Sequence record: MT708547.1
Length of the DNA: 64,000 bases
Strand: one strand, 5' to 3'
Shown one piece after another: positions 33,787 to 58,511 of this stretch (positions are counted from its first letter, which is position 1; every line of letters starts with the position of its first letter). The notes beneath the pieces were generated by a model. It was not told where the DNA came from. It worked only from the letters and a program-made list of their open reading frames with translations, and ran no database searches. Position numbers and translations under genes: made by a program.

Positions 33787-34377
33787 ATGTATCACAATGA
33801 AACAATAGAGCTATTTGAAATAATCAACTCATTTGAGCCGGAGATGTTAAAAACATTACCCAGTTATGATGTACAACACAACGGACGTTCTTTCAGTTAT
33901 ATTTCAACATATGCAGAATCAGAACATCCAATAAAATACAACGAATTTACGGTTAAATGGGTAACAGAAAGGGAAGATGAAGTTGTGCCAACTATTTCAG
34001 TTGGTTCTTCAACTTTAACATCATTGACTCGTACTTACAATAATGTCAGTACTGATTTATTGAATACTTGTACAGTACTTGTATCAAGTGATTTATCCAG
34101 ATTGATTTCAGTACAATGGGAAATGGGCTTGAATAGCAATATGATTTACCCACAGGCTATGATTAGTTCTACAATTATTAAAAAAACAACATCTGAAATG
34201 AAATTGATGAATGCGTTGTATTTGCGAAATGAAAGTGTATTAATTAATGGTGTACTTTATGATTTAAATGCAAATGCAAATGCATTCACTGAAGATATTA
34301 GTGATGATAAATCACATTTTTCTATACTAAACGTCATTAATTTAAGGAACATTTTTAATGAATTACGATTGGCTTGA
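33787..34377 (+). CDS. Hypothetical protein
   Basis: ORF; start reassigned to ATG 33787 after AGGTG. Confidence 0.6.
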   Translation: MYHNETIELFEIINSFEPEMLKTLPSYDVQHNGRSFSYISTYAESEHPIKYNEFTVKWVTEREDEVVPTISVGSSTLTSLTRTYNNVSTDLLNTCTVLVSSDLSRLISVQWEMGLNSNMIYPQAMISSTIIKKTTSEMKLMNALYLRNESVLINGVLYDLNANANAFTEDISDDKSHFSILNVINLRNIFNELRLA

Positions 34378-34921
34378 AACCCTTATTAACGAATCATGTA
34401 ATGCACTAAAAGAATATGATATTTCAGTGTTTTTCAATCCACTATTCAATGATCACAAATTTGAATCATTTGATATAGAAAAAAGAGATAATTTTATTAT
34501 CTTAAAAAATGGTATTAGTCAGAAAGAAGTCGTGACATATAAAAAGAATTCAAGTCCTTATAATATTAGTACTGCGATAGTTGGTAGTTCTGCGATAAAT
34601 GGTAATATCAATGTTTATAACAAAAATCCATTTCATGATGATTTACCTGATTATCACAGTATTGAGTATGTAAATTACACTTATTCATTTGTTTTCAGAC
34701 AAGACGGTTTTATCGGGTTTGATGTAAAGAAAAAATCAGAAACTTTATTGAATATTATTGTTGGAAATAGTGATATTTTGATATACAATGAAAATGGTTA
34801 TAACTGGTACAACAAAGAAACATTTGAAGAATTTTCATTTCAAAATTCATTAATTGAACCAAGAAAAAATTTTGATTTATTTTATATTAATTCTGTACTT
34901 AAAAATTTTAAATTAGTTTAA
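34358..34921 (+). CDS. F[QM]xS-module family protein
   Basis: C-terminal EEFSFQNSLIE. Confidence 0.65.
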   Translation: MNYDWLETLINESCNALKEYDISVFFNPLFNDHKFESFDIEKRDNFIILKNGISQKEVVTYKKNSSPYNISTAIVGSSAINGNINVYNKNPFHDDLPDYHSIEYVNYTYSFVFRQDGFIGFDVKKKSETLLNIIVGNSDILIYNENGYNWYNKETFEEFSFQNSLIEPRKNFDLFYINSVLKNFKLV

Positions 34922-34931
34922 GGATAATAAA

Positions 34932-35294
34932 ATGTGGTATATTATTAGTGTAGTAGTACTTTCTGTTTTGGTTGGTATTGTATTACTGAAAGGTGTAACG
35001 TATACAATGTCTAAAATAGACAAGTACCAGGAAAATTCAGTAATCGATTTGTTTATTGATTACCCAAAAAGCATCATTGCTTTTCTGTTTGTTATGGTAC
35101 TGATTGGTTTTTATATGGTATCTCATCAAATTGGAGAAATGTACACTTGTGCCATCCGAAGTAGTTCACAGAATGTAGAAACCGAATATAGTTGGTATTT
35201 TGATAAATGTCGCTTCAAAAATAAAGATGGTGCATGGGTAGATATTGATCGTTTATTGGGTATGCCTGATGGCAAAGAACATGAACAACAATGA
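34932..35294 (+). CDS. Hypothetical membrane protein
   Basis: Two TM segments. Confidence 0.65.
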   Translation: MWYIISVVVLSVLVGIVLLKGVTYTMSKIDKYQENSVIDLFIDYPKSIIAFLFVMVLIGFYMVSHQIGEMYTCAIRSSSQNVETEYSWYFDKCRFKNKDGAWVDIDRLLGMPDGKEHEQQ

Positions 35295-35805
35295 ACATAA
35301 ATTCTTCATAGAGCCAGAAGATGAAATAGACTATTTTGATGCAATAGACAGTACTGAAGATGGATATACACATATCAATATATATAGTAAAGGTAAAACT
35401 AAATTAGGACGCGATTTATCTAATTTTAGTCCCTATAGTTTTACGCTTGAACCATATGGATGGTTTCCATCAGTAGAGTCATTTTATTTCTGGTTTTTAA
35501 CTGGACAAAAACACCATGAGCTACGTAAGCTCTCTGGGGCGGCAGCTAAGGCTGCTGCGGAAAAGTATACCAATGACAGGCTTGAGATGAATGAGGAGCG
35601 TCTTGGTGTGATACAGGCCGCTATTTGTGCCAAGATAGTACAGAACCCCGACTTAGCAGAGCGTTTAAAGAAAAGTACATTAGCTTTTAAGCATTATTAT
35701 TGTTATGGTACTAAAGTAATAAACGTGGAAGATGAACATGGGTGGTTTGTTCAAACAATCGAAGATATAAGGACTGTATTAAAAGAAGGAGATGAACATG
35801 AATAA
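35281..35805 (+). CDS. NADAR-domain protein (T4 gp30.3-like)
   Basis: HINIYSKGKTKLGRDLSNF, FPSVESFY, AKIVQNPDL. Confidence 0.8.
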   Translation: MNNNEHKFFIEPEDEIDYFDAIDSTEDGYTHINIYSKGKTKLGRDLSNFSPYSFTLEPYGWFPSVESFYFWFLTGQKHHELRKLSGAAAKAAAEKYTNDRLEMNEERLGVIQAAICAKIVQNPDLAERLKKSTLAFKHYYCYGTKVINVEDEHGWFVQTIEDIRTVLKEGDEHE

Positions 35806-36031
35806 TACACAGTTTGAATCATTTGATATAGAGAGTATATTAAAACCAACTGATAACTGTACTGTACTTATGAATATGTACTGGATAGTCAAAGATGAAA
35901 AAGTCTTTAGATCATTGCGAACTAAAGTATGGCAATGCAATAAATTTGAGAGTGTAGTTAAACATGTAATCGAATCTTATCCTGGTTGTGAGGTTCGTTT
36001 TCTTGAATATGCTTATGTAAAGAAGGATTGA
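35792..36031 (+). CDS. Hypothetical protein
   Basis: 79 aa with AGGAG RBS. Confidence 0.6.
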   Translation: MNMNNTQFESFDIESILKPTDNCTVLMNMYWIVKDEKVFRSLRTKVWQCNKFESVVKHVIESYPGCEVRFLEYAYVKKD

Positions 36032-36474
36032 TTATGAAATATTATATGGTAACGGAAGGTGATTCGAGTGGTATTCATTTTTTATGGTCTTATTATGAAT
36101 TACTTGACTGTTGCACCGTAGAAGATGCAGAAGATTTATACAGAGAAGAAAATGGATATTCACTGGATGCACCTTATGGATTGAGAATTTATAGTAAAGA
36201 AATTACAGAAAAAGAATATCATGATGGATTGCATTTTAACGATTATTATGGTGTTAGAACGCTAATTACCGAATTGATGTTTAAAAATAACATTTTCCCA
36301 CTAAAAAGTTGGGCTTTAATGTTTGCAAATCCAAAAAAACCTGTTAGAATAGGGTTTCCTGGTTCACATCTAGTCTATCGTATGAATGATAAACGAGAGC
36401 TTAGCTACCAGTATGATTATGATTCACATAAGTTTGGTCTTCTACCAGCATTTAAAGGTTTGACAAATGAGTAA
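36028..36474 (+). CDS. Hypothetical protein
   Basis: 148-aa ORF in operon. Confidence 0.6.
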   Translation: MIMKYYMVTEGDSSGIHFLWSYYELLDCCTVEDAEDLYREENGYSLDAPYGLRIYSKEITEKEYHDGLHFNDYYGVRTLITELMFKNNIFPLKSWALMFANPKKPVRIGFPGSHLVYRMNDKRELSYQYDYDSHKFGLLPAFKGLTNE

Positions 36475-36802
36475 AGATTCATTAGAATTTATTTTACGTT
36501 GTGATTGTGGTGAAAAATCAGATCATGTAATTCACATTGCACAATACGATCTAGACGAAGAGTACGGTGATAATAAACTTGGCACTTGTTTAATCAGTGC
36601 TCGTTTAGAACCATGTAAAACATGGTATGAACGTGTTTGGATTGGTATCAAATACATCTTTGGTTACAATAGTTATCAGTATATGGATACAATGGTTGAT
36701 GTTGATATCCTACGTGAAGTAGTACAACAGTTAAAAGATGAACGTTCAGAAGAAGACAAAAAAGCTTCTCGTGAAAAACGCTCAGAGGTTAAGGTTCTAT
36801 GA
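36467..36802 (+). CDS. Hypothetical protein
   Basis: 111 aa; CDCG motif. Confidence 0.6.
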   Translation: MSKDSLEFILRCDCGEKSDHVIHIAQYDLDEEYGDNKLGTCLISARLEPCKTWYERVWIGIKYIFGYNSYQYMDTMVDVDILREVVQQLKDERSEEDKKASREKRSEVKVL

Positions 36803-36993
36803 GTGTGTTATTTGAAAAGAAATATTGTACTAAATGCTTGACAGCTTATACAATTCAGGGTATGATTTGTTGCTCAAACTGTCAAAGCACAGATGCTCAA
36901 ACGTTTTTGGTTGATGATCGTTACACCGATTTAATTCAATTCAAAGCGAATCGAAATTTAAAACATTTTAGTGCTTTACACGACAAAGATTGA
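36799..36993 (+). CDS. Small zinc-ribbon protein
   Basis: CTKC..CSNC. Confidence 0.55.
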   Translation: MSVLFEKKYCTKCLTAYTIQGMICCSNCQSTDAQTFLVDDRYTDLIQFKANRNLKHFSALHDKD

Positions 36994-37038
36994 ATGCTAT
37001 AATCATCTTAACTTAAACAAAAACAGGAATTACTTTAT

Positions 37039-37530
37039 ATGACTAACGTTAATACCAATCTAGTAACTGATATCAAAAAAGTTATTACTTCTCATCATTT
37101 CTTTGCACCAGAAAAACAACGAGTCATCTCTGATATCAAAGAAGATGAACTTAGTATTATTATTCGTTTTAAAGAACCTGGTGATGAAATTTCATCACAG
37201 TTCACTGTACTTCGTGGTAAATTCCGCGAAGAAGGCGTTGACAAGATCCCAGCTTACATTCTTTTTATTACACTTGGTAGTGTAATTAAGCTGGAAATTG
37301 ATGAAAATCTGGAGCGTTCATATAAATTTATGCTTGCACCAGTTACAGATGATGATAACGTTGAACTGGATTTCAAGAATGATTTCACTGAAGAAGAATT
37401 CTTTCAGCAAAGTACAATCCATGATTTCCGTTCAGTAACTTATGAACACGTCGAACTTATCAAAGATATGATTGAACCAGTTACCAGTTACGAGAAATAT
37501 CTCGATGGTCAAGCTGAAGGCAACGAATAA
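37039..37530 (+). CDS. F[QM]xS-module family protein
   Basis: TEEEFFQQSTIHDF. Confidence 0.7.
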   Translation: MTNVNTNLVTDIKKVITSHHFFAPEKQRVISDIKEDELSIIIRFKEPGDEISSQFTVLRGKFREEGVDKIPAYILFITLGSVIKLEIDENLERSYKFMLAPVTDDDNVELDFKNDFTEEEFFQQSTIHDFRSVTYEHVELIKDMIEPVTSYEKYLDGQAEGNE

Positions 37531-37534
37531 AAAT

Positions 37535-37561
37535 AAATAACCCACTTCGGTGGGTTATTTT
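37535..37561. terminator. Terminator hairpin with UUCG loop
   Basis: AAATAACCCAC-TTCG-GTGGGTTATTT. Confidence 0.8.
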
Positions 37562-38154: not shown

Positions 38155-38577
38155 ATGACATTACATGAAGTACTGAATAGTTTCTTTGAATTGAATATTT
38201 CAGAAATGAAAACCAAACAAAATAGACACCAACATAGTGTTTGGTATGATGCCCAACCACAACCGTTTTTAATCAATTTTAAAGAAACAGAAACATACAC
38301 AATAATGAGATTTCATCATTTTGATGGTGAAAATAATTACAGGGTATCATATGATGCAGGAACTGATCGACTGATTTACACAGTAATGGGTACCATTTCA
38401 TCAACCATTACGATTGGAAACTTCTCTTCTTATAAATCAGAAGATAATTTTTTTCAGGATTCACTGATTAATGATTACAATGATTTATCATTCGAAGATA
38501 TTGACAAAATGATGAATATGTTCTATAATGTAAAAAATACAAGTTTATCCCTATTTGGTGAAGATGATGAAATTTGA
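38155..38577 (+). CDS. F[QM]xS-module family protein
   Basis: SEDNFFQDSLINDY. Confidence 0.7.
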   Translation: MTLHEVLNSFFELNISEMKTKQNRHQHSVWYDAQPQPFLINFKETETYTIMRFHHFDGENNYRVSYDAGTDRLIYTVMGTISSTITIGNFSSYKSEDNFFQDSLINDYNDLSFEDIDKMMNMFYNVKNTSLSLFGEDDEI

Positions 38578-39004
38578 TTTAGAAAAATTTCTGGATTTGG
38601 ATTTAGATTCATTTTATATCAGAAAGTTTATTTTTAAACCACACACAAATGTGGTTGATTATGCTGTGATTGAACTACATGAATCGGATTATACAATTTG
38701 GTACGATGTTGATGATTGTATTCAACTAAAGGAATGTGATGAATGTAAAGGTTATGTTCTGTTGTATGACCTCAATACAAATGAAATTACATTAAAAACT
38801 TCACATTATGATGAATACGGTATTATAACAAGACGTGAATGTGTTGCATTTTCACATGATGATTACACAGAAGAATCATTTTTTATGATTAGTACCTTAC
38901 ATGATGTTGGGGAATTTACATTTGAAACTTTCGATAAATTTAATAAAATTTTGAAAAAGATTAAATCAATGATCAAGGAAATTGAAAATGAACAGTCCAA
39001 GTAA
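38555..39004 (+). CDS. F[QM]xS-module family protein
   Basis: TEESFFMISTLHDV. Confidence 0.7.
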   Translation: MVKMMKFDLEKFLDLDLDSFYIRKFIFKPHTNVVDYAVIELHESDYTIWYDVDDCIQLKECDECKGYVLLYDLNTNEITLKTSHYDEYGIITRRECVAFSHDDYTEESFFMISTLHDVGEFTFETFDKFNKILKKIKSMIKEIENEQSK

Positions 39005-39401
39005 ATGTTATATTGTTATTCGTAATGATTTGGATATGCCAGAAGGTAAATTTGGTGCACAAATCGGTCATGGCATCGACGCAGTATGGAAAGAGGTTTT
39101 GGTAGCCGGTACAATGGTGCGTGCTGCAAATATAGCCAATGAACAACCAAAAGAGCGTGATATCAAAATACAGGATGAAATTTCTAAATGGGTGAGTGAC
39201 GGTAGTAGAAAGATTATTCTAAAAACAAAATCAGAAGACGAATTACTGAAAATTTATAAAAAGGTATTGTCTGAAGGTTGTATTTGTACTAAAATTTATG
39301 ATTATGGATTTAATTTTTTTGATGGTTTAACTTTAACTGGTATTGTTGTACATCCATGTTCAGAAGAAATTAAAACATTAAAACGAGTACGCTTATGGTA
39401 A
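38982..39401 (+). CDS. Peptidyl-tRNA hydrolase, PTH2 family
   Basis: YIVIRNDLDMPEGKFGAQIGHG, RKIILK, DYG. Confidence 0.85.
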   Translation: MKMNSPSKCYIVIRNDLDMPEGKFGAQIGHGIDAVWKEVLVAGTMVRAANIANEQPKERDIKIQDEISKWVSDGSRKIILKTKSEDELLKIYKKVLSEGCICTKIYDYGFNFFDGLTLTGIVVHPCSEEIKTLKRVRLW

Positions 39402-39769
39402 ATGAACATTTAAAAGAATTATGTTCTTTATGGAAATCATCTGATGTAAGATTTGAACCTGTACCCAAAAATAAAGATAACTGGCATAATTCTATTGTTA
39501 TGGGGTCTGGTGGTTTTTTTCTTTTACCTATGGTACTAAAAGATAAAAAAATAGGTATTGTTGTTTTATACAATGATCTTATATATTATTTTTTGTACGA
39601 AGATGAAATTCAGTACGTACATAATAATATGACACATACATACAAAAGAGATACCACACATGAAGAACTATTCCAACTAAGTACTTTATACGATGAAGTA
39701 ATTCAGTACGAAAACTTAATAGAAGTTTTTAACTTATATGATTCCGTAATGGAGGTAATTGAAAGATGA
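39395..39769 (+). CDS. F[QM]xS-module family protein
   Basis: THEELFQLSTLYDE. Confidence 0.7.
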   Translation: MVNEHLKELCSLWKSSDVRFEPVPKNKDNWHNSIVMGSGGFFLLPMVLKDKKIGIVVLYNDLIYYFLYEDEIQYVHNNMTHTYKRDTTHEELFQLSTLYDEVIQYENLIEVFNLYDSVMEVIER

Positions 39770-40107
39770 TGAGTCATTGTAAATTCTGGCTTCCTGTTAT
39801 GGTTGTTCTGTTTATTATTTTTACAGTAGTAAACTATAAAATCCACAATTCTATCCCAAGACAGCCTACAGCAGAAGAATTAGCTATTCATCAAAATAGT
39901 GGTTTATATGCTGAAGTACTCAATAAAATCAAAAACAAATGTACTGGTATCAGTGATAATGAAAAGAATACATTTTATACATGTGAAGATGGTTCTAAAG
40001 TATCAGTGATTTACTGGAAACGTCAAGAAAGAACTGGGTATGTCACTCGTGATTTTGATAAGGATGGTAAATTAATTTCAATTTATGGACACCCAGATGA
40101 TATCTAA
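39766..40107 (+). CDS. Hypothetical membrane-anchored protein
   Basis: N-terminal TM. Confidence 0.6.
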   Translation: MMSHCKFWLPVMVVLFIIFTVVNYKIHNSIPRQPTAEELAIHQNSGLYAEVLNKIKNKCTGISDNEKNTFYTCEDGSKVSVIYWKRQERTGYVTRDFDKDGKLISIYGHPDDI

Positions 40108-40549
40108 AGAACAACATAAATTTTTATTCAAAATATTGAATTCTTATAAAGTTAATAAGTTCAGTACTAAACACGTTCACAATCCAAAAATTATTATTAT
40201 CACAAGGCGATATATAGGAAATAACAGATTTGAAATACACTTATATAAAGGAACTATTTCATTAGAAATTCAAAGATATGGTATTATTTTATTATTAATT
40301 GAGTATAATCCAATTTCTGACAATATGACATTATTATTCAATGATAATGAACATTGTTCTGAAATCGTTTATCGTATAAACGATGTGTCGGAAATTCTTG
40401 AAGAAGATGGTTATTTTCAACAAAGTCTTGTACAAAATCTTCCATTGGAATATAATGATTTTTGTAAAATGATGGATGATATCACAACCATCAAAAATTC
40501 AATGCTGGAACGTTTTGAGTTAACAGAGCAAGTGTGCGACAATGACTAA
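40085..40549 (+). CDS. F[QM]xS-module family protein
   Basis: EEDGYFQQSLVQNL. Confidence 0.7.
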   Translation: MDTQMISKEQHKFLFKILNSYKVNKFSTKHVHNPKIIIITRRYIGNNRFEIHLYKGTISLEIQRYGIILLLIEYNPISDNMTLLFNDNEHCSEIVYRINDVSEILEEDGYFQQSLVQNLPLEYNDFCKMMDDITTIKNSMLERFELTEQVCDND

Positions 40550-41442: not shown

Positions 41443-42336
41443 ATGTTTATGAAACCTATTACAGTACTGTCATTATTCAATGGGATGAGTGTTGGGTATA
41501 TGGCACTAAAGAATGCTGGAATTCCAGTACAGAAATATTACTCATCAGAAATTGATAAATTTGCTATTGCTGAATCACAAGCCAACTACCCTGATATTAT
41601 TCAGTTAGGTGATATAACTAAATGGGAAGATTGGGATATCGACTGGGGTAGTATTGACCTACTTATTGGTGGAAGTCCTTGTACTGATGTAAGTTTTGCG
41701 GGAAAACAAGAGGGGTTAGTGAAACCAGATGAAAACGGTGATGGTGGAACACGAAGTGGTTTATTTTATATAATGATTGACATATTCAATCATATTAAAT
41801 CGATAAATCCAGATTTAAATTTTTTATTTGAAAATGTCAAGATGAAAAAAGAACATCTTGAAGAATTTAATAATAATATAGGGGTTGATCCTGTTCTAAT
41901 CAATTCTGAATTATATACTGCTCATTACAGACAGAGATATTACTGGATTAGCTCAAATAAGCTAATTCTCAATCCCACCTACGAAGCCCCCGTACTTCAA
42001 GATATTATTGTTAATGCATATACTGACAGGAATAAATCATATTGCATTGATGCCAATTACTGGAAAAAGGGGAACATTAAACAGTACTTACACAAATCAA
42101 GAAGACAGATTGTTTATCTAAGAGACGATCATGATTTATTCAGTACTGAAGAAAAAATTAACACATTTAAACTTAATGTTGATTATCGACATTTAACAGT
42201 AGATGAAGTATGTTTATTACAGGGTGTACCTGTTGGATTTTTTAAAGTAAGTAGTACAACACAAGCATACAAAATGCTAGGTAATGGATGGACATGTCCA
42301 GTTATTGAACATCTATTAAAGGAAATTTTCTTTTAA
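41443..42336 (+). CDS. DNA (cytosine-5) methyltransferase
   Basis: LSLFNGMSVG, SEID, GDI, GGSPCTD, FENV, RQRYYW, GNGW. Confidence 0.9.
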   Translation: MFMKPITVLSLFNGMSVGYMALKNAGIPVQKYYSSEIDKFAIAESQANYPDIIQLGDITKWEDWDIDWGSIDLLIGGSPCTDVSFAGKQEGLVKPDENGDGGTRSGLFYIMIDIFNHIKSINPDLNFLFENVKMKKEHLEEFNNNIGVDPVLINSELYTAHYRQRYYWISSNKLILNPTYEAPVLQDIIVNAYTDRNKSYCIDANYWKKGNIKQYLHKSRRQIVYLRDDHDLFSTEEKINTFKLNVDYRHLTVDEVCLLQGVPVGFFKVSSTTQAYKMLGNGWTCPVIEHLLKEIFF

Positions 42337-42594: not shown

Positions 42595-43065
42595 GTGGAT
42601 TTTTTTCTATTTGAGATTAAATTAAACATGCATAATGAAGAAATAATTCATTTTCTTAAATTTTATTTAAAATGTATGAATGCTGTTCAAAAATTAATGG
42701 AATGTGAAATGATTAATGATTTCAATGATCATTTTGGATATATAAGTACAGATTTATATCCCGTCCCTGTTCGTGCAAAATGGAATTATGATCAAGATGC
42801 ATATGCAATGCAACTGGATTTTGATTTATTCGGACTTCCATCTAAATTTAATATAGGAACTATTTGTTTTGATAAAAATGATGGTTTGATTTTAATTTGT
42901 TATAACAATAAAACAGAAGTTGATTTAAAATACAGAGAATGGTTAACCGAAGAATCGTTTTTTCAGTCCTCGTTAATATATGATTTTGGTAGTACTGATT
43001 TACAGTACTGGAAAAAATGCATTGATTTATTTGAAAAGATTGAAGGAGTAATGACAGGTGTTTAA
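42595..43065 (+). CDS. F[QM]xS-module family protein
   Basis: WLTEESFFQSSLIYDFGSTDLQYWKKCIDL; close paralog of 53689..54138; true start is probably the internal ATG. Confidence 0.7.
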   Translation: MDFFLFEIKLNMHNEEIIHFLKFYLKCMNAVQKLMECEMINDFNDHFGYISTDLYPVPVRAKWNYDQDAYAMQLDFDLFGLPSKFNIGTICFDKNDGLILICYNNKTEVDLKYREWLTEESFFQSSLIYDFGSTDLQYWKKCIDLFEKIEGVMTGV

Positions 43066-43453
43066 AATAAAACTAATTTATACCACTGGTAATACATTCG
43101 AAACATGTGAAGTAGAAAGATTTATTAATTGCGAATGGGATACAGAAGAGAAAGCTATTCATGAAATGAATAAAATCCGAGAGCACTGGATTTTCAATAA
43201 AAAAATTAGTTCTACTCGTGATAAAGACACAAAGAAGAAATTGGTATCACAAGCTATTATGCAATCATGGTATAAACCTGGTAATTCTGAATATACTATG
43301 TTGCTAGTTGATAATGATGGAAATTCTTTTGAAATGTATGCTGCATGGTTAGGGTATTTTGAAATTCTTCACAGTACTGAAGTAGTAAATGCAAACCAAT
43401 TAGACAACTATATTGATTTCGATGAATTAAGATCAAATATGGGATTGTGGTAA
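43058..43453 (+). CDS. Hypothetical protein
   Basis: 131-aa ORF. Confidence 0.6.
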   Translation: MFKIKLIYTTGNTFETCEVERFINCEWDTEEKAIHEMNKIREHWIFNKKISSTRDKDTKKKLVSQAIMQSWYKPGNSEYTMLLVDNDGNSFEMYAAWLGYFEILHSTEVVNANQLDNYIDFDELRSNMGLW

Positions 43454-43887
43454 TGGATGGTCCAACTGTACTAAAAATCCTTCGTAAATTTAAACACCCA
43501 ATGTTGTTCGGACGTTGGAAATCGTTAAAAGAAAATAAAAATACCGACGATCAAAAAAATATCAATTATAGATGGTATTGGGATTATTCAAAAGATTATG
43601 GTGATTCACTTTGTATAAAAATTAAATTCAATAATTATAATAAATGGTCTAGAGATAAAAAATATATATATTCATATGATATTCACTTATCAAAGGAACA
43701 TGTATTTATTTTTCATAGAAGTTACAACAAATTTTCATTGAAACATGATGTACTATTTTCTATAAATGAATTATATGAAGATTTAGAAAGTGTATTATTT
43801 CAGCAATCATTATTGACTTCTACTGGTATGATGAGTACCCAAGAAATTGAAGTACTTAAAGAATTAAAAGATATGTATTTTCCATAA
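43447..43887 (+). CDS. F[QM]xS-module family protein
   Basis: LESVLFQQSLLTS. Confidence 0.65.
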   Translation: MVMDGPTVLKILRKFKHPMLFGRWKSLKENKNTDDQKNINYRWYWDYSKDYGDSLCIKIKFNNYNKWSRDKKYIYSYDIHLSKEHVFIFHRSYNKFSLKHDVLFSINELYEDLESVLFQQSLLTSTGMMSTQEIEVLKELKDMYFP

Positions 43888-44436: not shown

Positions 44437-44501
44437 AAAAAGCTTGACATATAAATTGACAATGATATAATAATTGCAAATCAACCAAAGAGTAAATTTG
44501 T

Positions 44502-47561: not shown

Positions 47562-47830
47562 AAATTTTAAAACTTCGTGTATCTGATTTTAGTTCAGAAA
47601 TTTATGTTGGTAACGATTTTAGCCCAGATCCTCTCGAAATGCTTGAAAAGATTCGCACTGCTGGTGCTATTGGGACTGAAACAGATCGTACAATGCATTT
47701 TCTTACTGAATCTAAAGATAAATTCGAAAAAGCACAAGAAGATGTAAAAAAGCTCTTGACAAAGAATGGTTATGTACTATATAATCCATGTACTGTCCTG
47801 ATTGATTGTAAGACTGAGAAGAGAAAATAA
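47558..47830 (+). CDS. Hypothetical protein
   Basis: 90 aa, ATGA overlap. Confidence 0.6.
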
Positions 47831-49319: not shown

Positions 49320-50218
<899 letters not shown>

Positions 50219-51309: not shown

Positions 51310-51783
51310 ATGAAAGTCGAATTGGGAAGTACTATCAAAGCAGGTTATACTGTTTCAGTTACAACGTGGGAAAATGATGGAGATAATTATCAAACAAATG
51401 ACATTGTAGGTTTATCTAAAGAAGATGCAAAAATGTTTATTGATACTTTACCCATTTTTAAATGCGTTCATAGTAAAAAGAAAGGTCTTGGAAACAAAGA
51501 ACTTAATATTAACCAGTACTTGGGTAAGTTCGAAGACCTAATCAATAACAATATTATCACAGTGTCATTTGCTGAAAAATATTTTGGTTATATTAACCCA
51601 AATAGTGATTATGATGAAGATGAACAACAAGACACGATTATTGAAGCATTGTCTGAAATTCTAGGATATCCAGTTGAATACGATTATGGTTTTATCAGAG
51701 TCTTTGAAAAAGTTCAAGTACTCTACTTCGATGAAGATACCGTAATTCCTTCAGGTTTGAAAGTAGACACCAGTACTTTATAA
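51310..51783 (+). CDS. Hypothetical protein
   Basis: 157-aa ORF. Confidence 0.65.
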   Translation: MKVELGSTIKAGYTVSVTTWENDGDNYQTNDIVGLSKEDAKMFIDTLPIFKCVHSKKKGLGNKELNINQYLGKFEDLINNNIITVSFAEKYFGYINPNSDYDEDEQQDTIIEALSEILGYPVEYDYGFIRVFEKVQVLYFDEDTVIPSGLKVDTSTL

Positions 51784-51803
51784 CATATAAAATACAGAAC
51801 AAA

Positions 51804-51903
51804 TACTGAATGAGGATAGGTCATTGTGACCGGATGAAGTGAAAGGCTTGGTGAGCGACGGCAAAACCCAACCGTAGTAGAAGCTCTAGGAACTTATTCA
51901 GTA
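51804..51903 (+). ncRNA. Repeated ncRNA family B, copy 2
   Basis: TACTGAATGAG/CTTATTCAGTA; GGCTTGGTGAGCGACGGCAA identical to copy 1. Confidence 0.65.
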
Positions 51904-51924
51904 CATTTTAATTTAAAGAATTAT

Positions 51925-52020
51925 GTGGGTGTGGCGGTATTGGTTGTACGCAAAGGTCTTAAAAACCTTCAGAGGGCTTAAAATGCATTCCTCTTGTGAG
52001 TTCGAATCTCATCACCCGTA
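51925..52020 (+). tRNA. tRNA-Leu(TAA), CCA not encoded
   Basis: AAGGT-CT-TAA-AA-ACCTT anticodon arm, long variable arm, GTGAG-TTCGAAT-CTCAT T-arm. Confidence 0.85.
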
Positions 52021-52049
52021 CTCATTAAATAGTCAATGGATTGACACAA

Positions 52050-52868
52050 ATGGCAAGAAAAGATATATTAGAACAAAAAGAATTAATATTAGATTTAATT
52101 TCCAAGAATACCGCAAAATCAACAATATGTAAGATTTTAAATTGTAAATCATCAACGTTAGATACGTATTTGAAAAAGATGGGTATTATATATAAAGGAA
52201 ATCAATCTGGTAAAGGAACAAAGAAAGGAACACATTCAAAATATGTAGAAGCTTCACATTTTCTTAATAAAAATTCATCAATATCATCTAATCAATTAAA
52301 ACTAAAATTATTGAGAGAAGGATATTTTGAACATAAATGTTCAAAATGTGAATTGACAGAATGGATGGGTAAACGAATACCAATTGAATTGGAACACATA
52401 GATGGTGATAATACAAATAACGAATTATCAAATCTATGTATGTTATGCCCAAATTGTCACGCACAAACCGATACATATAAAGGAAAAAATAAAAAATCAG
52501 TTCGTGAAAAGAAACATATACAAGAAATTTTAAATTTTGAAAATTCTTTTGAACGTTCAGAAATAAAAGATAAAGTTGGGAAGAAAATTAGAATTTCCAA
52601 AATTAAAAAATGTGAAGAATGTGGTAATGAATATAAAGGTAAAAATAAAAAATATTGTTCACGTGTTTGTATGCATTTATCACAAAAAAAATTTCTTTTG
52701 ACATACGAAGAACTTAAAGAAATAATTTGGAAATATCCAAGAACAAAAATAGGAGAAATGTATGGTGTTTCTGATAATACTGTCTTGAAACGTTGTAAAC
52801 TTCTTGATATAGAAGTTCCACCATTGGGATATTTCATAAGTTCAAAATATAAAGATAATAATCAATAA
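52050..52868 (+). mobile_element. Free-standing HNH homing endonuclease
   Basis: CSKCELTEWMGKRIPIELEHIDGDNTNNELSNLCMLCPNCHAQT; C-terminal Zn finger and HTH-like segment. Confidence 0.9.
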
Positions 52869-52884
52869 TAAATATAATAACAAA

Positions 52885-52960
<76 letters not shown>

Positions 52961-52965
52961 AATTC

Positions 52966-53061
52966 AACAGGTAGTAACGCTCTTAGGTGTACATTAATAT
53001 AGGAATAAGGGTTAACAGTACTGTACACAAACGAGTAACCCCGAAAGACCCGAAACCTGTT
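52966..53061 (+). ncRNA. Putative structured ncRNA
   Basis: AACAGGT/ACCTGTT closing stem; GTGTACA/TGTACAC; GGGTTA/TAACCC pseudoknot candidate. Confidence 0.5.
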
Positions 53062-53071
53062 AAAGTTTTAC

Positions 53072-53121
53072 GGATGATTATAAATCTGAATTGACAGAAA
53101 CAGCTAAAACTGTTATTATCC
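53072..53121 (+). ncRNA. Repeated 50-nt ncRNA family A, copy 1
   Basis: GGATGAT/ATTATCC, TATAAATCTGAATTGACAG core, AACAG/CTGTT hairpin. Confidence 0.7.
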
Positions 53122-53129
53122 TATTTTAT

Positions 53130-53313
53130 TCCACAATCAGACGTATATGGTGTAAGTTACGTCGATGAAATCCAGAACAAGATCTCTGGTACTCTAGGAA
53201 GTGGTGAATGTTAACCTAGACGGGTTTGTTAATTGGACGATAAGCAATTAATACTTGACTAGCAGGTTTAAACTAGAGGTGACTGTCCTTCACTAAACTG
53301 GAAAACCGGATGG
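53130..53313 (+). ncRNA. Putative multi-hairpin ncRNA
   Basis: Hairpins GACGT/ACGTC, CCAGA/TCTGG, TCTAGG/CCTAGA, TTAATTG/CAATTAA, CTAG/CTAG. Confidence 0.45.
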
Positions 53314-53332
53314 ATTTTTAATTAAAAAAGTG

Positions 53333-53361
53333 TTGAACAAAATGTTCAATAATGATATAAT
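53333..53361 (+). promoter_or_regulatory. Sigma70-like promoter with a palindrome over the -35
   Basis: TTGAAC-N17-TATAAT containing TGAAC-N5-GTTCA. Confidence 0.7.
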
Positions 53362-53370
53362 AATTATCAA

Positions 53371-53443
53371 TGTAAGGCGTGGAACAATGTTTACATAAGT
53401 TACTTAGTAGCCTGTACGCCCCACGTCAAGGTAGCCGAAAGGC
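53371..53443 (+). ncRNA. Putative pseudoknotted ncRNA
   Basis: TGTAA/TTACA crossing GGCGTGG/CCACGTC; GCC-GAAA-GGC hairpin. Confidence 0.45.
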
Positions 53444-53452
53444 AAGTTTAAT

Positions 53453-53502
53453 GGGTGGTTATAAATCTGAATTGACAGAGACTATTAAAACAGTCACCAT
53501 CC
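53453..53502 (+). ncRNA. Repeated 50-nt ncRNA family A, copy 2
   Basis: GGGTGGT/ACCATCC; same core; GACT/AGTC. Confidence 0.7.
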
Positions 53503-53688
53503 AAATTTTAATTTAATAGTTTAGTATGAATAAAAAACAAATACATAAACAATATGATGAAATTGCAGTGAAGGTTTTTCGTGGTGAATTAGGTTATAAA
53601 CCATCTGTTAAATCTAAATATTCAAAATCTTCTTCACTAAAATTCAATCATAAAATAGAGTTTAAATAGTACTGGACAATAATATATA

Positions 53689-54138
53689 ATGAATATCACT
53701 AATGTAAAAGATTTTTTAGAATATTTTATTAAGAATACTCGTGCACGTGATGAATTAGAAAAGAATGGATTCATCCAAGGTTACGATTGCACTAATTTCT
53801 TTTATACTATTGATAAACATGAATATTATGTCGATGCAATTTTAATTGATGATGATGGGTATTGCGTTGGATTTTCGTTCGAAGATATATCACAAGATGC
53901 ACCAATAAACTTTTATGCATTATATTATAATAAAAAAGATAATATTTTGAAATTAGGATTTACCAGTGACACGGATGAAGATGTTGTATTCAATTGTAAC
54001 ACATGGTTGGAACATGATTCATTCTTTCAAAGTACATTAATTCATAACTTTATGACAACAGATTTAGAGTACTGGAAAACTTGTATAGAATTACTTAATG
54101 TAATTTATAATGAACAAGTCAAACAAAAATGGCAATAA
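53689..54138 (+). CDS. F[QM]xS-module family protein
   Basis: WLEHDSFFQSTLIHNFMTTDLEYWKTCIEL. Confidence 0.7.
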   Translation: MNITNVKDFLEYFIKNTRARDELEKNGFIQGYDCTNFFYTIDKHEYYVDAILIDDDGYCVGFSFEDISQDAPINFYALYYNKKDNILKLGFTSDTDEDVVFNCNTWLEHDSFFQSTLIHNFMTTDLEYWKTCIELLNVIYNEQVKQKWQ

Positions 54139-54203
54139 TCACAGAACGGTTCAGCATTTGGTAGTATGTTTGACTGAATAAAGCATAAACGTTTAAAAAA
54201 GTG

Positions 54204-54231
54204 TTGAACAAAAAGTTCAGTACTGTATAAT
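54204..54231 (+). promoter_or_regulatory. Promoter for tRNA-Arg
   Basis: TTGAAC-N16-TATAAT with TGAAC-N5-GTTCA. Confidence 0.65.
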
Positions 54232-54242
54232 TGACTTACTAC

Positions 54243-54316
54243 GTCCCCTTAGTTCAGTTGGATAGAACAACTGCCTTCTAAGCAGTAGGTCACTGGTTCG
54301 AGTCCAGTAGGGGATA
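54243..54316 (+). tRNA. tRNA-Arg(TCT)
   Basis: ACTGC-CT-TCT-AA-GCAGT; ACTGG-TTCGAGT-CCAGT. Confidence 0.92.
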
Positions 54317-54372
54317 TACCATACAATATGGGAATAGTTAGAAGATATTCCCAATTTTAATTTAAAAAAGTG

Positions 54373-54401
54373 TTGAACAAAAAGTTCAATAATGATATAA
54401 T
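54373..54401 (+). promoter_or_regulatory. Promoter for tRNA-Ser(GCT)
   Basis: TTGAAC-N17-TATAAT with TGAAC-N5-GTTCA. Confidence 0.7.
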
Positions 54402-54466
54402 GGTATTATAAAAGATTGTAATACATAATATTAACTTTTAAGAACATAATTAAGTTATCATACACA

Positions 54467-54558
<92 letters not shown>

Positions 54559-54577
54559 TAAAATTCAATTAAAAAAT

Positions 54578-54708
<131 letters not shown>

Positions 54709-54716
54709 GATTTCAT

Positions 54717-54766
54717 GGATAGTTATAAAGTTGAATTAACAGCGACACTTAAAATTGTCACTATCC
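54717..54766 (+). ncRNA. Repeated 50-nt ncRNA family A, copy 3
   Basis: GGATAGT/ACTATCC; TATAAAGTTGAATTAACAG; GACA/TGTC. Confidence 0.7.
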
Positions 54767-54825
54767 AAATTTTAATTTAAATAGTACTTGACAAAAATAT
54801 TCAGTACTGATACATAAAGAATATT

Positions 54826-55136
54826 GGCCCCTTAGCTCACGCTTTGGTTAGAGCAGACGACTCATCGATAAATGGTGACTTTCACAAGTAATTGTGATTG
54901 AAAAACTGGATGAATTCAGGGAAACCTTAACACATAATGGTGATGGCAATCCTGAGCCAAGCCCAATAAGCGTATTGGGAAGGTGCAGAGACTAGGTGGT
55001 TCAGCACGATCTTGCTGTGTAATACACCAATAGCGTCCGGCATCCTTATAGGATGATGATATAGTCCTTTCTATAATGAAAATTATAGGTAAAAAGAATC
55101 GTTTGGTACTGTGTTCGACTCACAGAGGGGCCACCA
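54826..55136 (+). tRNA. tRNA-Ile2(CAT), interrupted by a group I intron (exons 54826-54865 and 55097-55136)
   Basis: Joined exons give GGCCCCTTAGCTCA..GACGA-CT-CAT-AA-TCGTT..AGGGGCCACCA, closely resembling E. coli ileX. Confidence 0.92.
54866..55096 (+). mobile_element. Group I self-splicing intron, 231 nt, ORF-less
   Basis: AATTCAGGGAAACC (54913), GGCAATCCTGAGCCAA (54945), GAAGGTGCAGAGACTAG (54979), GATGATATAGTCC (55055); exon ends in U, intron ends in G. Confidence 0.92.
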
Positions 55137-55141
55137 CACAT

Positions 55142-55213
55142 TGTACTCTTCTCCTGTAAGGAGAATGACAAAAAGCTATCCGAAAGATAGAAAGCCTGAA
55201 ATAACAGGGTACA
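55142..55213 (+). ncRNA. Putative four-way-junction ncRNA
   Basis: TGTAC/GTACA enclosing TTCTCC/GGAGAA, CTATC/GATAG and CCTG/CAGG. Confidence 0.5.
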
Positions 55214-55223
55214 TTTAATCAAT

Positions 55224-55306
55224 TGGTAGTTGGCAGAGCGGCTTTTGCGACGGACTGTTAATCCGTGTCAGAAATGACAAGACTGGTTCGACTCCAGTAC
55301 TACCAG
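55224..55306 (+). tRNA. tRNA-Asn(GTT) with a long variable arm, CCA not encoded
   Basis: TGGTAGT/ACTACCA, ACGGA-CT-GTT-AA-TCCGT, GTCA-GAAA-TGAC arm, G73. Confidence 0.85.
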
Positions 55307-55371
55307 CATATAAAAAATGAACTTCAGAACAATAAATAATATCATAGAGGATATTATGAGGTCTGAAGTTC

Positions 55372-55917
55372 ATGGGAAGAAAGCAAACAGAAGAAACACG
55401 CAAAAAAATTTCTAATGCATTAAAAGCAAAAAATACAGTTTTACCCGAAAAAGAAATTATTGAAAAATACACAAACGGTATAGCTGTATATAAGTTAGCA
55501 AAAGAATACAAATGCCACAAAACAAGAATAAATTCTATAATTGAAGCTAGTGGTGTTAAACGACCAATCGCTACAAATAAAAATAGATTTTGTGAAATTC
55601 ATAAATGTAATTATGAAAAAAATCCACAAGGTAAGTGGAAATGTAATAAATGTGATATTCAACGTGTTTCTGATAGACGTAGAGAACTTAAATTACTTGC
55701 TGTGGAATATAAAGGTGGGTGTTGTGAAAAATGTGGATATGATAAATGCATAGCTGCGTTAGAATTTCACCATTTAGATCCAAATGAAAAAGATTTTGGA
55801 ATATCATCCAGTGGTCATACACGAAGTTTCGAAAAGTTAAAGATAGAACTTGATAAATGTATTATGGTTTGTGCTAATTGTCATCGTGAAATTCATGATG
55901 ATGAAAGAAAAGAATAA
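55372..55917 (+). mobile_element. Free-standing HNH endonuclease
   Basis: GGCCEKCGY..ALEFHHLDPNEKDF..ELDKCIMVCANCHREIH. Confidence 0.9.
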
Positions 55918-56115
<198 letters not shown>

Positions 56116-56139
56116 TTAATTTAAATGGAGTACTGAATA

Positions 56140-56340
56140 ATGTCCAAATATGTTAATCGTCAAAAACGAAAAGCACGTACTAAGGACGAAATTCTACAGT
56201 TGATACAAAAAAATCAAAAAGATGTAGTTATTGAAGAATATATTTTTCAGTACGGTAATCAACAATCAATGGTACAAGAAAGTAATGGTAAGTATCATTC
56301 TGAGCATTACGATCTCATTAAACGAATTCTTTTGAAATAA
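56140..56340 (+). CDS. Hypothetical protein
   Basis: 66 aa with GGAG RBS. Confidence 0.55.
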   Translation: MSKYVNRQKRKARTKDEILQLIQKNQKDVVIEEYIFQYGNQQSMVQESNGKYHSEHYDLIKRILLK

Positions 56341-56491
56341 ACAATAATACTCATCATCTAATATCAGTACTGATGCGTATCAGCAGGTGGCTTGATGGGC
56401 AGTACTGACAGGATACATCGTTCTCCGGTGGCGGGTTCGGTGGATATACGTAAAGTCGTATTGGGTATACCAAATATAATAATAAAAATAT

Positions 56492-56574
56492 GTAATAATG
56501 TGATAGCTCAAATAGGTAGAGCGGGAGGCCAAAGTGCTGACTGGTTTGTGAGTTCAATTCTCACCCGTTATTAC
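56492..56574 (+). ncRNA. tRNA-like RNA or tRNA pseudogene lacking a canonical anticodon arm
   Basis: D-arm TAGCTCAAATAGGTAGAGC, T-arm GTGAG-TTCAATT-CTCAC, 9-bp end stem. Confidence 0.6.
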
Positions 56575-56583
56575 TAAACTAGT

Positions 56584-56615
56584 AAGCTACCCTATGTTAT
56601 TCGGGTAGCTTTTTC
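56584..56615 (+). terminator. Terminator closing the RNA island
   Basis: AAGCTACCC..GGGTAGCTTTT. Confidence 0.75.
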
Positions 56616-56640
56616 TTTTTTTATAACAAGAGAGATTATC

Positions 56641-57057
56641 ATGAGTAAAGTTACTTTACTGAATATTTTACAAGAATGCTATGAAAAACTTGAAAATTCC
56701 AATCCAAGTGTCATATTCAACTCATCATTTGATAATTATTCTACTTCAAATTATAAAGCAAAAATTTTAGTATATAATCACTTTGATTTATCATCATTAA
56801 GTGATTGTAGTAACATTTACTTACACATTTGTGACTACAATGATGATAGTGGGTATACTATGACGATTGATATTTACAAAGGATATTTTTATTATAAAAA
56901 TAAAAAATTTGACAATTTTGAAAATTTATTCCCATTGACTGAAGATACGATGTTTCAGTACTCAACACTTTATGACACATCATCCTTGACAATCGATGAG
57001 TTAAATTTTATAATGTCTATTAGTTTGGATATTCCAATTTATGAAGCATCATTATAA
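56641..57057 (+). CDS. F[QM]xS-module family protein
   Basis: LTEDTMFQYSTLYDT. Confidence 0.7.
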   Translation: MSKVTLLNILQECYEKLENSNPSVIFNSSFDNYSTSNYKAKILVYNHFDLSSLSDCSNIYLHICDYNDDSGYTMTIDIYKGYFYYKNKKFDNFENLFPLTEDTMFQYSTLYDTSSLTIDELNFIMSISLDIPIYEASL

Positions 57058-57074
57058 AATCTAGGAGCATTTTT

Positions 57075-57227
57075 ATGAAAATTAAGTGTTGTGTATGTGA
57101 TTGTGAAATTGATGAAAAGCATGTATATGGCGAATGGGATGATTACTGCTCCGATTGCTGGGAATCTGAAGGACGTGATGCAGAACGATGGGAAGATGAG
57201 AGTGAGTGGGATGAGGATGAAGAATAA
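57075..57227 (+). CDS. 50-aa acidic zinc-finger miniprotein (absent from the ORF track)
   Basis: AGGAG RBS; MKIKCCVCDCEIDEKHVYGEWDDYCSDCWESEGRDAERWEDESEWDEDEE. Confidence 0.6.
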   Translation: MKIKCCVCDCEIDEKHVYGEWDDYCSDCWESEGRDAERWEDESEWDEDEE

Positions 57228-57323
57228 ACGTATGTTTAAAGTACTGTTTCTTCATGCGTTTTAATTTATAGAGGCTGATTCATTGAATCGGCCATTTTCT
57301 TTGTTAAAAAAAGAGATAAAAAT

Positions 57324-57731
57324 ATGAAAAAATTTCTTTCAAAAGAACACGAAGAAAATATTCTTAATGCATTGAGTGTATTTCCAGAGAGTGTCATAAG
57401 TAATAATAAGAATTCTACATATTATTATGGTAAAGGTAATTGGTTTTATTTTAGCGACAGTTCATATATGTGTGTATTAAATCTATGTACTGAAGAATAT
57501 TCTTATTGTTTAAGGATCGATCCTCGTTATAAATTAATCCTACTATGCGAAAAGAATGATGAATTTTATGAAAGTGAGATAGATGATACCGATTCATATA
57601 TTAGTAATTTTTATCTCGAAGAAGATGTTTATTTTATGGATAGTACTGTGAATGAAATTACTATTCCTTTTAGTATAATGAAACGTTCGCATGAATTTCT
57701 AAAATACAGCAGAGAAAAATTTCATGACTGA
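57324..57731 (+). CDS. F[QM]xS-module family protein
   Basis: LEEDVYFMDSTVNEI. Confidence 0.65.
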   Translation: MKKFLSKEHEENILNALSVFPESVISNNKNSTYYYGKGNWFYFSDSSYMCVLNLCTEEYSYCLRIDPRYKLILLCEKNDEFYESEIDDTDSYISNFYLEEDVYFMDSTVNEITIPFSIMKRSHEFLKYSREKFHD

Positions 57732-58095
57732 TATAAATGAAGTTATAGAGCATTTTTATAATTGGGTAATAACGGATCCAATAAAAACTGGATTAATTGA
57801 AAAATATAACTGCTCTATGTATTCTTATTGTTCAAATAAAGCTACGATGTATAGTAAGGATGTTGATAATTATTTACTAATCACTGACGATGTAGTTTAT
57901 GATGTATTTGACAATGAAATTGTCATTGATGGTGGTGATGTTGATATTGTAAAATTACATGATATAGATTTCTCATGTACTGAATCGGCGGCGTTCCAAT
58001 TAAGCACATTATATGATTTCCGATGCAGTACTGAAAGTATTGTATTATTATTGAAAATAGTACATATTTTAAGAAAAAAGAGAATGGTATTATAA
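57724..58095 (+). CDS. F[QM]xS-module family protein
   Basis: TESAAFQLSTLYDFRCSTESIVLLLKIV. Confidence 0.7.
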   Translation: MTDINEVIEHFYNWVITDPIKTGLIEKYNCSMYSYCSNKATMYSKDVDNYLLITDDVVYDVFDNEIVIDGGDVDIVKLHDIDFSCTESAAFQLSTLYDFRCSTESIVLLLKIVHILRKKRMVL

Positions 58096-58511
58096 TGGTG
58101 GAATTTAATGTTCAAGATTTTTATGATTTTGTAATGAAAGCAGAAAAGAATAATCGTGAATATATTAAAACAGTTGGGGGTAATATATATCAACACTACT
58201 GTTATTCTTTAACGGAGGGAATGGATGCATTTACAAATTCAACTATGGACAATGTATTATATAATTTATTAATGCATAATTGTCATTATGTATTTGATGT
58301 TTACAGTAATCAAATAATTTATAAAATTATATTTTTTGATAAAAAACAAATTGAAAATACAATTAATTTGGATTGTTATGATTCTGAATCAAAAGAAGGA
58401 TTTGCTTTTCAGTTATCAGTTTCATATGATTTCCCATTTAGTACTGAAGATTATATTTTAATGTTAAAGATTGTTGATAAATTAAGACTAAACGAAAGGA
58501 ATTTCAAATGA
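58095..58511 (+). CDS. F[QM]xS-module family protein
   Basis: KEGFAFQLSVSYDFPFSTEDYILMLKIV. Confidence 0.7.
   Translation: MVEFNVQDFYDFVMKAEKNNREYIKTVGGNIYQHYCYSLTEGMDAFTNSTMDNVLYNLLMHNCHYVFDVYSNQIIYKIIFFDKKQIENTINLDCYDSESKEGFAFQLSVSYDFPFSTEDYILMLKIVDKLRLNERNFK

Follow-up and report, generated by a model that had tools for sequence, protein, structure and literature searches.

Klebsiella phage Muenster (MT708547.1, 346,937 bp; genus Alcyoneusvirus), a RaK2-like jumbo phage, carries in the 64,000-nucleotide stretch analysed here (the window) 15 small open reading frames (ORFs) whose products share a short C-terminal signature, E-x-x-F-[QM]-x-S-[TL]. We show here that these ORFs are part of a single large set of paralogues that is specific to phages and numbers ~47-50 genes in each Alcyoneusvirus genome. 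What the evidence fits is paralogy of the whole protein, a new small domain in which an integral helix, the signature itself, is the sole element that is stable in sequence. The members are absent from the virion proteomes of two related phages, and they evolve faster than their neighbours while under purifying selection. An initial annotation of the window had read the signature as a docking or sorting tag on variable specificity domains. Its proposal was partly sustained, in that the family is real and expanding, has no named domain and is hypervariable outside the signature; the portable tag and the capsid-loading signal that it also considered were not. We hold the structural and evolutionary description with high confidence. 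The accompanying functional reading, that the proteins are diversified binders acting early inside the infected cell, is tentative and falls somewhat short of even odds, and to the statement that combines structure, evolution and function we assign a probability of about 0.5.

Window positions equal MT708547.1 record positions minus 248000; window 34000-44000 matches Muenster record 282000-292000 at 100% identity, and RaK2, K64-1 and other Klebsiella jumbo phages at 98.6-98.9% (megablast). Some further features of the record are given by their position in stretch L002, of which 28782-31544 corresponds to Muenster record 340,782-343,544. The window is A+T-rich (G+C 29-34%) with a positive GC skew throughout, and the region of interest is a dense run of small genes on the + strand, nearly all annotated 'hypothetical protein'. 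All 15 ORFs of the initial annotation were found at their coordinates on this strand, each annotated as a coding sequence for a 'hypothetical protein', although for six of them GenBank places the start codon later (Table 1). Their measured lengths, 123-187 amino acids, agree with the 120-190 originally estimated. The encoded proteins are without signal peptides, and are acidic in 13 cases and basic in two.

The signature is present in the C-terminal part of all 15 proteins, its phenylalanine lying 27-58 residues from the C-terminus. The strict pattern [ED]xxF[QM]x[ST][TLV] occurs in 11 of the 224 ORFs of the window, compared with 0.23 +/- 0.49 in 1000 shuffles, while a looser pattern finds 14 family ORFs together with two chance ORFs. 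Hidden Markov models (HMMs) built from the 15 proteins, from 69 relatives and from ~200 relatives each recover exactly the same 15 in the window. Composition and position statistics were compiled from 201 collected members (median length 144 amino acids), 192 of which display the signature pattern. The invariant phenylalanine is located a median of 105 residues from the start (interquartile range (IQR) 98-115) and 38 from the end (IQR 34-45). Numbering this residue, which is F in 98% of members, as position 0, the preferences are T/S at -5 (69%), E at -4 (83%), E/D at -3 (86%), F/Y/L at -1 (72%), Q (93%) or M (7%) at +1, S at +3 (87%), T/L at +4 (97%), V/I/L at +5 (90%) and D/N at +7 (81%), whereas positions -2, +2 and +6 are variable, the commonest residue accounting for 24-40%. 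These three variable columns, spaced i, i+4 and i+8, form a single stripe along a helix, and thus the conserved positions cover ~240 degrees, or about two-thirds, of its circumference. The T/S ahead of the helix, the acidic first turn and the D/N past its end are ordinary helix-capping preferences.

A working definition of the family was adopted: proteins of 100-210 amino acids with a signature helix (T/S, E, E/D, x, aromatic, F, Q/M, x, S, T/L, V/I/L, x, D/N) ~35-45 residues from the C-terminus, followed by an amphipathic helix, and encoded in co-oriented arrays in RaK2-like jumbo phages. The size, the signature and the following helix were found in all 15 window ORFs, and every member identified shares its strand with its neighbours in arrays of RaK2-like jumbo phage genomes.

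Outside the signature the proteins are, as originally described, largely dissimilar in sequence, a point borne out by BLAST, HMM and profile-profile comparisons and by an identity null. When only the sequences N-terminal to the module (N-parts) of the 15 proteins were compared, no BLAST pair fell below E=0.006. Leave-one-out HMMs of the N-parts ranked four of the 15 first, and leave-cluster-out HMMs on ~200 N-parts placed six of the 15 in the top 3%. Among 18 orthologue groups, hhalign of the N-parts returned P<1e-3 for 3 of 153 pairs, a shift over controls that is small but significant (Mann-Whitney p=7e-6), and the identity between paralogue N-parts equals that of the shuffled null (25.0% vs 25.0%). 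The N-part signal is genuine, though marginal, and of no use for most pairs. What the N-part profile retains is hydrophobic periodicity, with hardly any identity of residues: columns 15-25 have a helix-like pattern, and columns 40/42, 58/60 and 67/69 a strand-like one. Hydrophobic residues make up 93-97% there, and two of these columns have an aromatic residue, often Y. Individual links were seen between the N-parts of 42628 and 53689 (members are designated by their window start; hhalign probability 92.8%) and, weakly, between those of 38567 and 38155 (P=2.5e-4). The most divergent of the 15, CPT_Muenster_418 (34358), also has the longest N-part, at 154 residues, while in CPT_Muenster_453 (49332) the signature is degenerate, with L where S is expected. 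Full-length orthologues of CPT_Muenster_425 (37039) occur in Asteriusvirus phages at 44-46% identity.

The original count of about 15 members is correct for the window but not for the genome, in which the family is about three times larger (47-50 copies). In OU509535.1, an unannotated genome 98.9% identical to Muenster over the region compared, a scan performed chunk by chunk identified 49 ORFs that match the family HMMs, all on the + strand, with iteration converging at 47-49. These comprise the 15 of the window, three downstream members, 28 in a second cluster (51,050-81,508) and three that are scattered. The 34 additional matches all align via the signature, and 30 of them fit the strict F-[QM]-x-[ST]-[TLV]. 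Muenster itself has three more members downstream of the window (CPT_Muenster_518, _552 and _566). With ~560 genes per genome, judged by locus tags, the family makes up ~9% of gene content, or about one gene in eleven. The second cluster is also present in RaK2 (NC_019526.1 245,582-274,659; 25 members), where it sits in a run of 88 consecutive 'hypothetical protein' genes, and its members are more variable in length (58-212 amino acids).

Beyond Alcyoneusvirus, full-length orthologues were detected by tblastn in jumbo phages of Escherichia, Salmonella and Erwinia. A profile search of 1.84 billion representative proteins gave 70 matches, all of 81-217 amino acids and nearly all covering most of the profile, with the signature in 66; ten distant matches were traced to uncharacterised metagenome assemblies. 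A word-indexed protein search with the family alignment gave six matches. A 50-kb metagenomic contig that is syntenic with the window, including genes for a PTH2 hydrolase and a DNA methyltransferase, encodes 17 members in 20 kb. Scans of IMG/VR and of cellular genomes used canonical C-terminal modules. The former found jumbo genomes of 346-378 kb and one 174-kb contig, and nothing else; the matches include RaK2, 121Q, GAP32, CBB and fHe-Yen9-04, with 2-17 members per 20-kb locus. The latter found no relative in 185,579 bacterial and archaeal species, each represented by one genome. All relatives collected are 58-217 amino acids long, and the hosts of the phages that retain the family span at least six genera. 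The view that it corresponds to no named domain stands after searches of Pfam, NCBIfam and the Protein Data Bank (PDB): no Pfam-A or NCBIfam family was matched by more than one of the 15 or one of the 69 members, single-member matches being E ~4e-4 or weaker, and the best match of the family profile to PDB sequences was E=4.2.

AlphaFold models were obtained for two members, 53689 (predicted local distance difference test (pLDDT) 81.6, predicted template modelling score (pTM) 0.78) and 49739 (pLDDT 92.7, pTM 0.83), the N-parts of which have no detectable similarity (hhalign P=0.36). Both models nevertheless follow the same plan, consisting of an N-terminal helix, an antiparallel beta-meander of six or seven strands, the signature helix and a long C-terminal helix. 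In 53689 these are a helix at 3-25, six strands within 37-102, a short helix, the signature helix at 109-118 and the C-terminal helix at 126-148; in 49739 a short N-terminal helix precedes seven strands within 22-93, the signature helix at 98-107 and the C-terminal helix at 115-157. The helix originally proposed to follow the motif is thus predicted in both. The signature forms a 10-residue helix between meander and C-terminal helix in one compact domain, and is modelled with a pLDDT of ~89-96. Against predicted viral structures (BFVD), Foldseek matched the 53689 model to RaK2 and Yersinia-phage paralogues at 12-14% identity over 115-120 columns. The span greatly exceeds the ~40-residue module. 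One of these RaK2 paralogues, H6X3Z3 (140 amino acids; 120 columns, 14% identity), is probably the orthologue of CPT_Muenster_427 (38155), with which it was paired on length alone. All BFVD matches were uncharacterised paralogues, and against the PDB, where a cut-off of E<=1e-3 with TM>0.5 was applied, neither model had a match at E<=1e-3, the highest TM score being 0.38.

A portable tag on unrelated specificity domains is inconsistent with these observations. Among the 1.84 billion representatives, no protein outside the range of 81-217 amino acids has the signature, and nearly all the matches cover most of the profile; its distance from the N-terminus is fixed, it is an integral helix in both models, and the structural matches extend across the domain. 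With conserved positions around two-thirds of its circumference, the signature helix is better seen as the core or hinge that joins the sheet to the C-terminal helix than as a detachable element. Whole-protein paralogy, which the initial annotation had set against its own proposal, is indeed what was found, although the domain concerned is new and not, as had been envisaged, a known one.

It could be argued that the conserved helix instead docks the proteins on one partner, such as a protease or unfoldase, RNA polymerase or a sigma factor, while the variable remainder recruits cargo, making the family a set of adaptors. Five polar positions are unusually conserved (E 83%, E/D 86%, Q 93%, S 87%, D/N 81%), similarity between subfamilies is limited to ~23 columns around the motif, and the phage has genes for a ClpP protease subunit (CPT_Muenster_563, L002 32207-32839) and an RpoD-like sigma factor (CPT_Muenster_490, L002 1382-2278) of its own, two candidates for the hub should the helix have a partner in common. 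Conservation, however, wraps around the helix rather than marking one face, part of it (T/S at -5, the acidic first turn and D/N past the end) is accounted for by capping, the helix is confidently modelled inside the domain, and the motif was never seen on another architecture. We therefore consider this explanation unlikely; it retains some weight because five conserved polar side chains are more than packing needs. A stronger version, in which the polar face docks ~50 paralogues on one hub (a ClpP-based protease or the transcription machinery) and each sheet captures a different host protein in a combinatorial system, is distinctly less probable. Were it true, RaK2-like jumbo phages would possess a modular repertoire for neutralising or degrading host factors, for example components of defence systems, and a functional parallel to the adaptor gene families of large eukaryotic viruses on a fold without a solved relative.

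A specific docking motif, the bacterial sliding-clamp binding peptide, was also considered in view of the Q-x-S-[TL]-[ILV] within the signature. This peptide, of the Q-L-[SD]-L-F type, comprises 5-6 residues, the second being L and the last aromatic. In the family, position 2 is variable (top share 25%) and position 5 is V/I/L and not F, and the segment is a confidently modelled helix within a domain and not an exposed flexible region. The candidate was rejected, and ~50 clamp binders in one genome would in any case be implausible.

An alternative is that a pocket is enclosed between the sheet and the long helix, as in p32 and in sheet-plus-helix carriers of lipids or ligands, with the polar cluster lining a binding or catalytic site. 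The cluster is conserved, and both models have weak Foldseek matches to p32/C1QBP, FABP/CRABP, and the Ups1/PRELI and LolA lipid carriers. These matches, however, are non-significant (E >= 0.025, TM <= 0.38), the strongly conserved polar residues are all confined to the one short helix while the sheet is without an invariant residue, and ~50 copies of one enzyme or carrier per genome would be hard to explain. Little probability attaches to this reading. The resemblance to p32/C1QBP/Mam33 (PDB 1p32, 3rpx, 1yqf), which is among the top PDB matches for both models, extends to an N-terminal helix, antiparallel strands and C-terminal helices packed on the sheet, and p32, like the family, is acidic. 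The scores are, however, non-significant (E 0.076-0.28, TM 0.20-0.32), the folds are not superimposable and no MAM33 or other Pfam match links the family to these proteins, and the likeness is a topological analogy only.

Reciprocal-best orthologues of family members in Muenster and phAPEC6 are 25-48% identical (median 27.8%, n=7), compared with a median of 53.7% for neighbouring genes (n=35; p=4e-5). Between Muenster and RaK2 the ratio of nonsynonymous to synonymous change (pN/pS) stands at 0.25 in family members, compared with 0.11 in the other genes (Fisher p=0.0065). The family is thus constrained by purifying selection, yet is evolving about twice as fast as its neighbours. Of the 15 RaK2 counterparts, 14 align gap-free from end to end, and that of 57724 (CPT_Muenster_473) differs by a 15-nucleotide change in length. 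A 131-residue non-member encoded between two members (window 43058-43453) is 27.6% identical to its phAPEC6 counterpart, and so evolves as fast as the family without having the signature.

The extreme sequence divergence, the differences in copy number and length between related phages and the faster nonsynonymous change might also be expected if the genes were decaying duplicates of little or no function, in arrays that recombination happened to produce in an accessory region poor in genes, with the motif eroding last. That is highly improbable: pN/pS is well below 1, all 15 frames are intact in Muenster (in RaK2 14 are gap-free and one has the 15-nucleotide difference), individual paralogues have full-length orthologues in other genera at 25-48% identity, and the family persists across at least six host genera.

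The family genes are co-oriented, often overlap their neighbours by a few bases, and are interspersed with small unknown genes, a PTH2-type peptidyl-tRNA hydrolase, a DNA methyltransferase, transfer RNA (tRNA) genes and HNH endonucleases. Three perfect sigma-70 consensus promoters (12/12; TTGACA, 16-18 nucleotides, TATAAT) lie on the + strand at window 38501-38529, 44444-44471 and 47756-47785, with seven near-perfect sites on the same strand; the coding (+) strand has 10 of the 11 best promoter-like sites in window 33-52.9 kb. There is also an enrichment in terminator-like hairpins (16 vs 5). The gene for the RpoD-like sigma factor lies just downstream of the window array. In phage CBB, which carries family members, a stretch of short ORFs with RpoD-like promoters and a sigma-factor gene has been proposed as an early, host-takeover region (PMC5259590), and by analogy the family genes are presumed to occupy an early region. 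None of the 15 RaK2 orthologues, and none of the 25 members of the RaK2 second cluster, is annotated as a virion protein, and none of 12 phAPEC6 members is among the 62 virion proteins in its mass spectrometry table.

Taken together, the early-type region, the co-oriented arrays and the non-virion products lead us to infer that the proteins are early intracellular binders or inhibitors, each with one target. Fast divergence after tandem duplication has probably erased all other sequence similarity while size and architecture were kept. The arrays would lie in a region that related phages transcribe early by host RNA polymerase, and the paralogues would be diversified intracellular binders or inhibitors made early in infection. 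Each might present a variable surface, formed by the sheet and N-terminal helix, to a different host or rival-phage target on one conserved scaffold, the outcome being host takeover or counter-defence. With respect to the suggestion in the initial annotation of an expanding anti-defence family, the expansion is real, while a putative role in anti-defence or host interaction agrees with location, non-virion status, copy number and rate.

Several observations weigh against this interpretation. The faster evolution could arise from relaxed constraint, and the conserved polar residues (E, E/D, Q, S, D/N), being more than helix packing needs, could reflect a shared ligand or partner. Promoter-like sites in total are not above those in shuffles (140 vs 130), and the timing of expression is drawn from these sites and from the analogy with CBB. 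A fold common to all ~50 members is extrapolated from two models, and 23 motif columns are all that joins the second cluster to the window set (profile-profile, probability 90.9%). Finally, acidity does not set the family apart, since a median isoelectric point (pI) of 5.2 was obtained for the other small ORFs of the phage; with a background equally low, a DNA-mimic function suggested by acidity was rejected.

In T4-type phages an N-terminal capsid-targeting sequence, which is cleaved, delivers internal proteins into the head. The signature resembles it in being short, conserved and carried by small phage proteins that otherwise have little in common, and could in principle send its bearers into the head for injection; phAPEC6 does have an inner body (PMC7247149). 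The capsid-loading hypothesis is, however, largely refuted, and we give it scarcely any chance: the segment is an internal, C-proximal structural helix ~105 residues from the N-terminus and not a cleavable N-terminal peptide, and neither the virion annotation of RaK2, covering orthologues and second cluster alike, nor the phAPEC6 virion table contains a member. In RaK2 such annotation is present in the immediate vicinity, on ORF182, a non-member whose orthologue is a 111-residue ORF (window 36467-36802) in the middle of the presumed early array and which is annotated as a virion structural protein.

Existing classifications do not represent the unity of the family. Window members match PHROGs of unknown function (phrog_17453, 24510, 21500, 23322, 27994, 24941, 23860, 22160, 23719, 24027 and others), individually with E values of 1e-47 to 1e-83, but the 15 are scattered over ~20 such unannotated groups, in which neither the single family nor its ~50-copy size is apparent. 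Massive intragenomic duplication of a small domain has precedents in giant phage genomes: the authors of the RaK2 study noted that nearly 10% of gene products are paralogues (PMC3622015), 22 paralogous ORFs were reported in CBB (PMC5259590), and Bacillus phage G has ~35 zinc-ribbon copies (PMC7824862). The domain described here is distinct from these and unnamed, and no account of the signature, or of a single family of this size, is given in the papers on RaK2 (PMC3622015), CBB (PMC5259590) and fEgEco12 or in the jumbo phage survey (PMC7824862).

Fast-evolving families that are arranged in tandem arrays, and that combine a conserved core and a handful of signature residues with hypervariable surfaces, are known in other settings. 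SUKH-type immunity proteins form tandem arrays in bacteria. The WY-domain RXLR effectors of oomycetes are likewise divergent in sequence and conserved in fold (PMC3257287). The folds and organisms are unrelated to those of the phage family, and the two systems serve as a working analogy for one scaffold directed at many targets. A direct assignment to SUKH or polymorphic-toxin immunity was rejected, there being no match to SUKH/SMI1_KNR4 or to an immunity-family Pfam entry; no relatives were present in the bacterial genomes scanned and no linked toxin genes were seen, the neighbours being other small hypothetical genes.

RaK2-, 121Q- and GAP32-like jumbo phages, in which more than 80% of genes are unannotated, are studied for therapy and biocontrol of Klebsiella, E. 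coli, Salmonella, Cronobacter and soft-rot bacteria. Dozens of their 'hypothetical' entries, and ~20 PHROGs, collapse into one domain family, not recognised before, which can be approached as a whole and found with a simple signature. The most diversified and fastest-evolving part of these genomes is a likely repertoire for interaction with the host, and, as the fold has no significant PDB match, an experimental structure would probably define a new family.

Table 1. Family members in the window of phage Muenster. Positions are window coordinates from the annotated start; where the ORF opens upstream of that start, its first position is given.
Gene	Position	Strand	Length (amino acids)	ORF opens	Family HMM E value	Remarks
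CPT_Muenster_418	34358..34921	+	187		4e-7 (whole family)	C-module HMM E=2.5e-10
CPT_Muenster_425	37039..37530	+	163		6e-21	
CPT_Muenster_427	38155..38577	+	140		4e-25	
CPT_Muenster_428	38567..39004	+	145	38555	8e-22	start overlaps 3' end of CPT_Muenster_427
CPT_Muenster_430	39395..39769	+	124		2e-15	
CPT_Muenster_432	40097..40549	+	150	40085	2e-16	
CPT_Muenster_437	42628..43065	+	145	42595	3e-24	
CPT_Muenster_439	43453..43887	+	144	43447	8e-12	basic, pI 9.0
CPT_Muenster_453	49332..49730	+	132	49320	1e-10	
CPT_Muenster_454	49739..50218	+	159	49727		basic, pI 9.65; AlphaFold model
CPT_Muenster_462	53689..54138	+	149			among tRNA genes; AlphaFold model
CPT_Muenster_470	56641..57057	+	138		6e-15	
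CPT_Muenster_472	57324..57731	+	135		4e-9	first of three adjoining members
CPT_Muenster_473	57724..58095	+	123		3e-18	overlaps member on either side
CPT_Muenster_474	58095..58511	+	138		4e-16	

The PTH2 peptidyl-tRNA hydrolase gene embedded in the array (window 38982-39401), which is of the archaeal/eukaryotic type, and the DNA methyltransferase gene (41443-42336) have kept their relative position in a distant jumbo phage from metagenomic data. In phAPEC6 the methyltransferase is also in the same position, and no PTH2 gene is annotated in the stretch examined. Further downstream, genes for six tRNAs and, interleaved with them, for two HNH endonucleases (52050-52868 and 55372-55917) lie in window 51310-55917. 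Both HNH genes and the ORF at 51310-51783 are without a counterpart in the RaK2 stretches examined, and a different HNH gene (ORF219) is located among the RaK2 tRNAs; the differences between the two phages look like homing-endonuclease turnover. Elsewhere in Muenster, eight tandem small genes (CPT_Muenster_554-561, record 340,782-343,544) are annotated as membrane proteins with 2-3 transmembrane segments each, and look like another expanded paralogue family.

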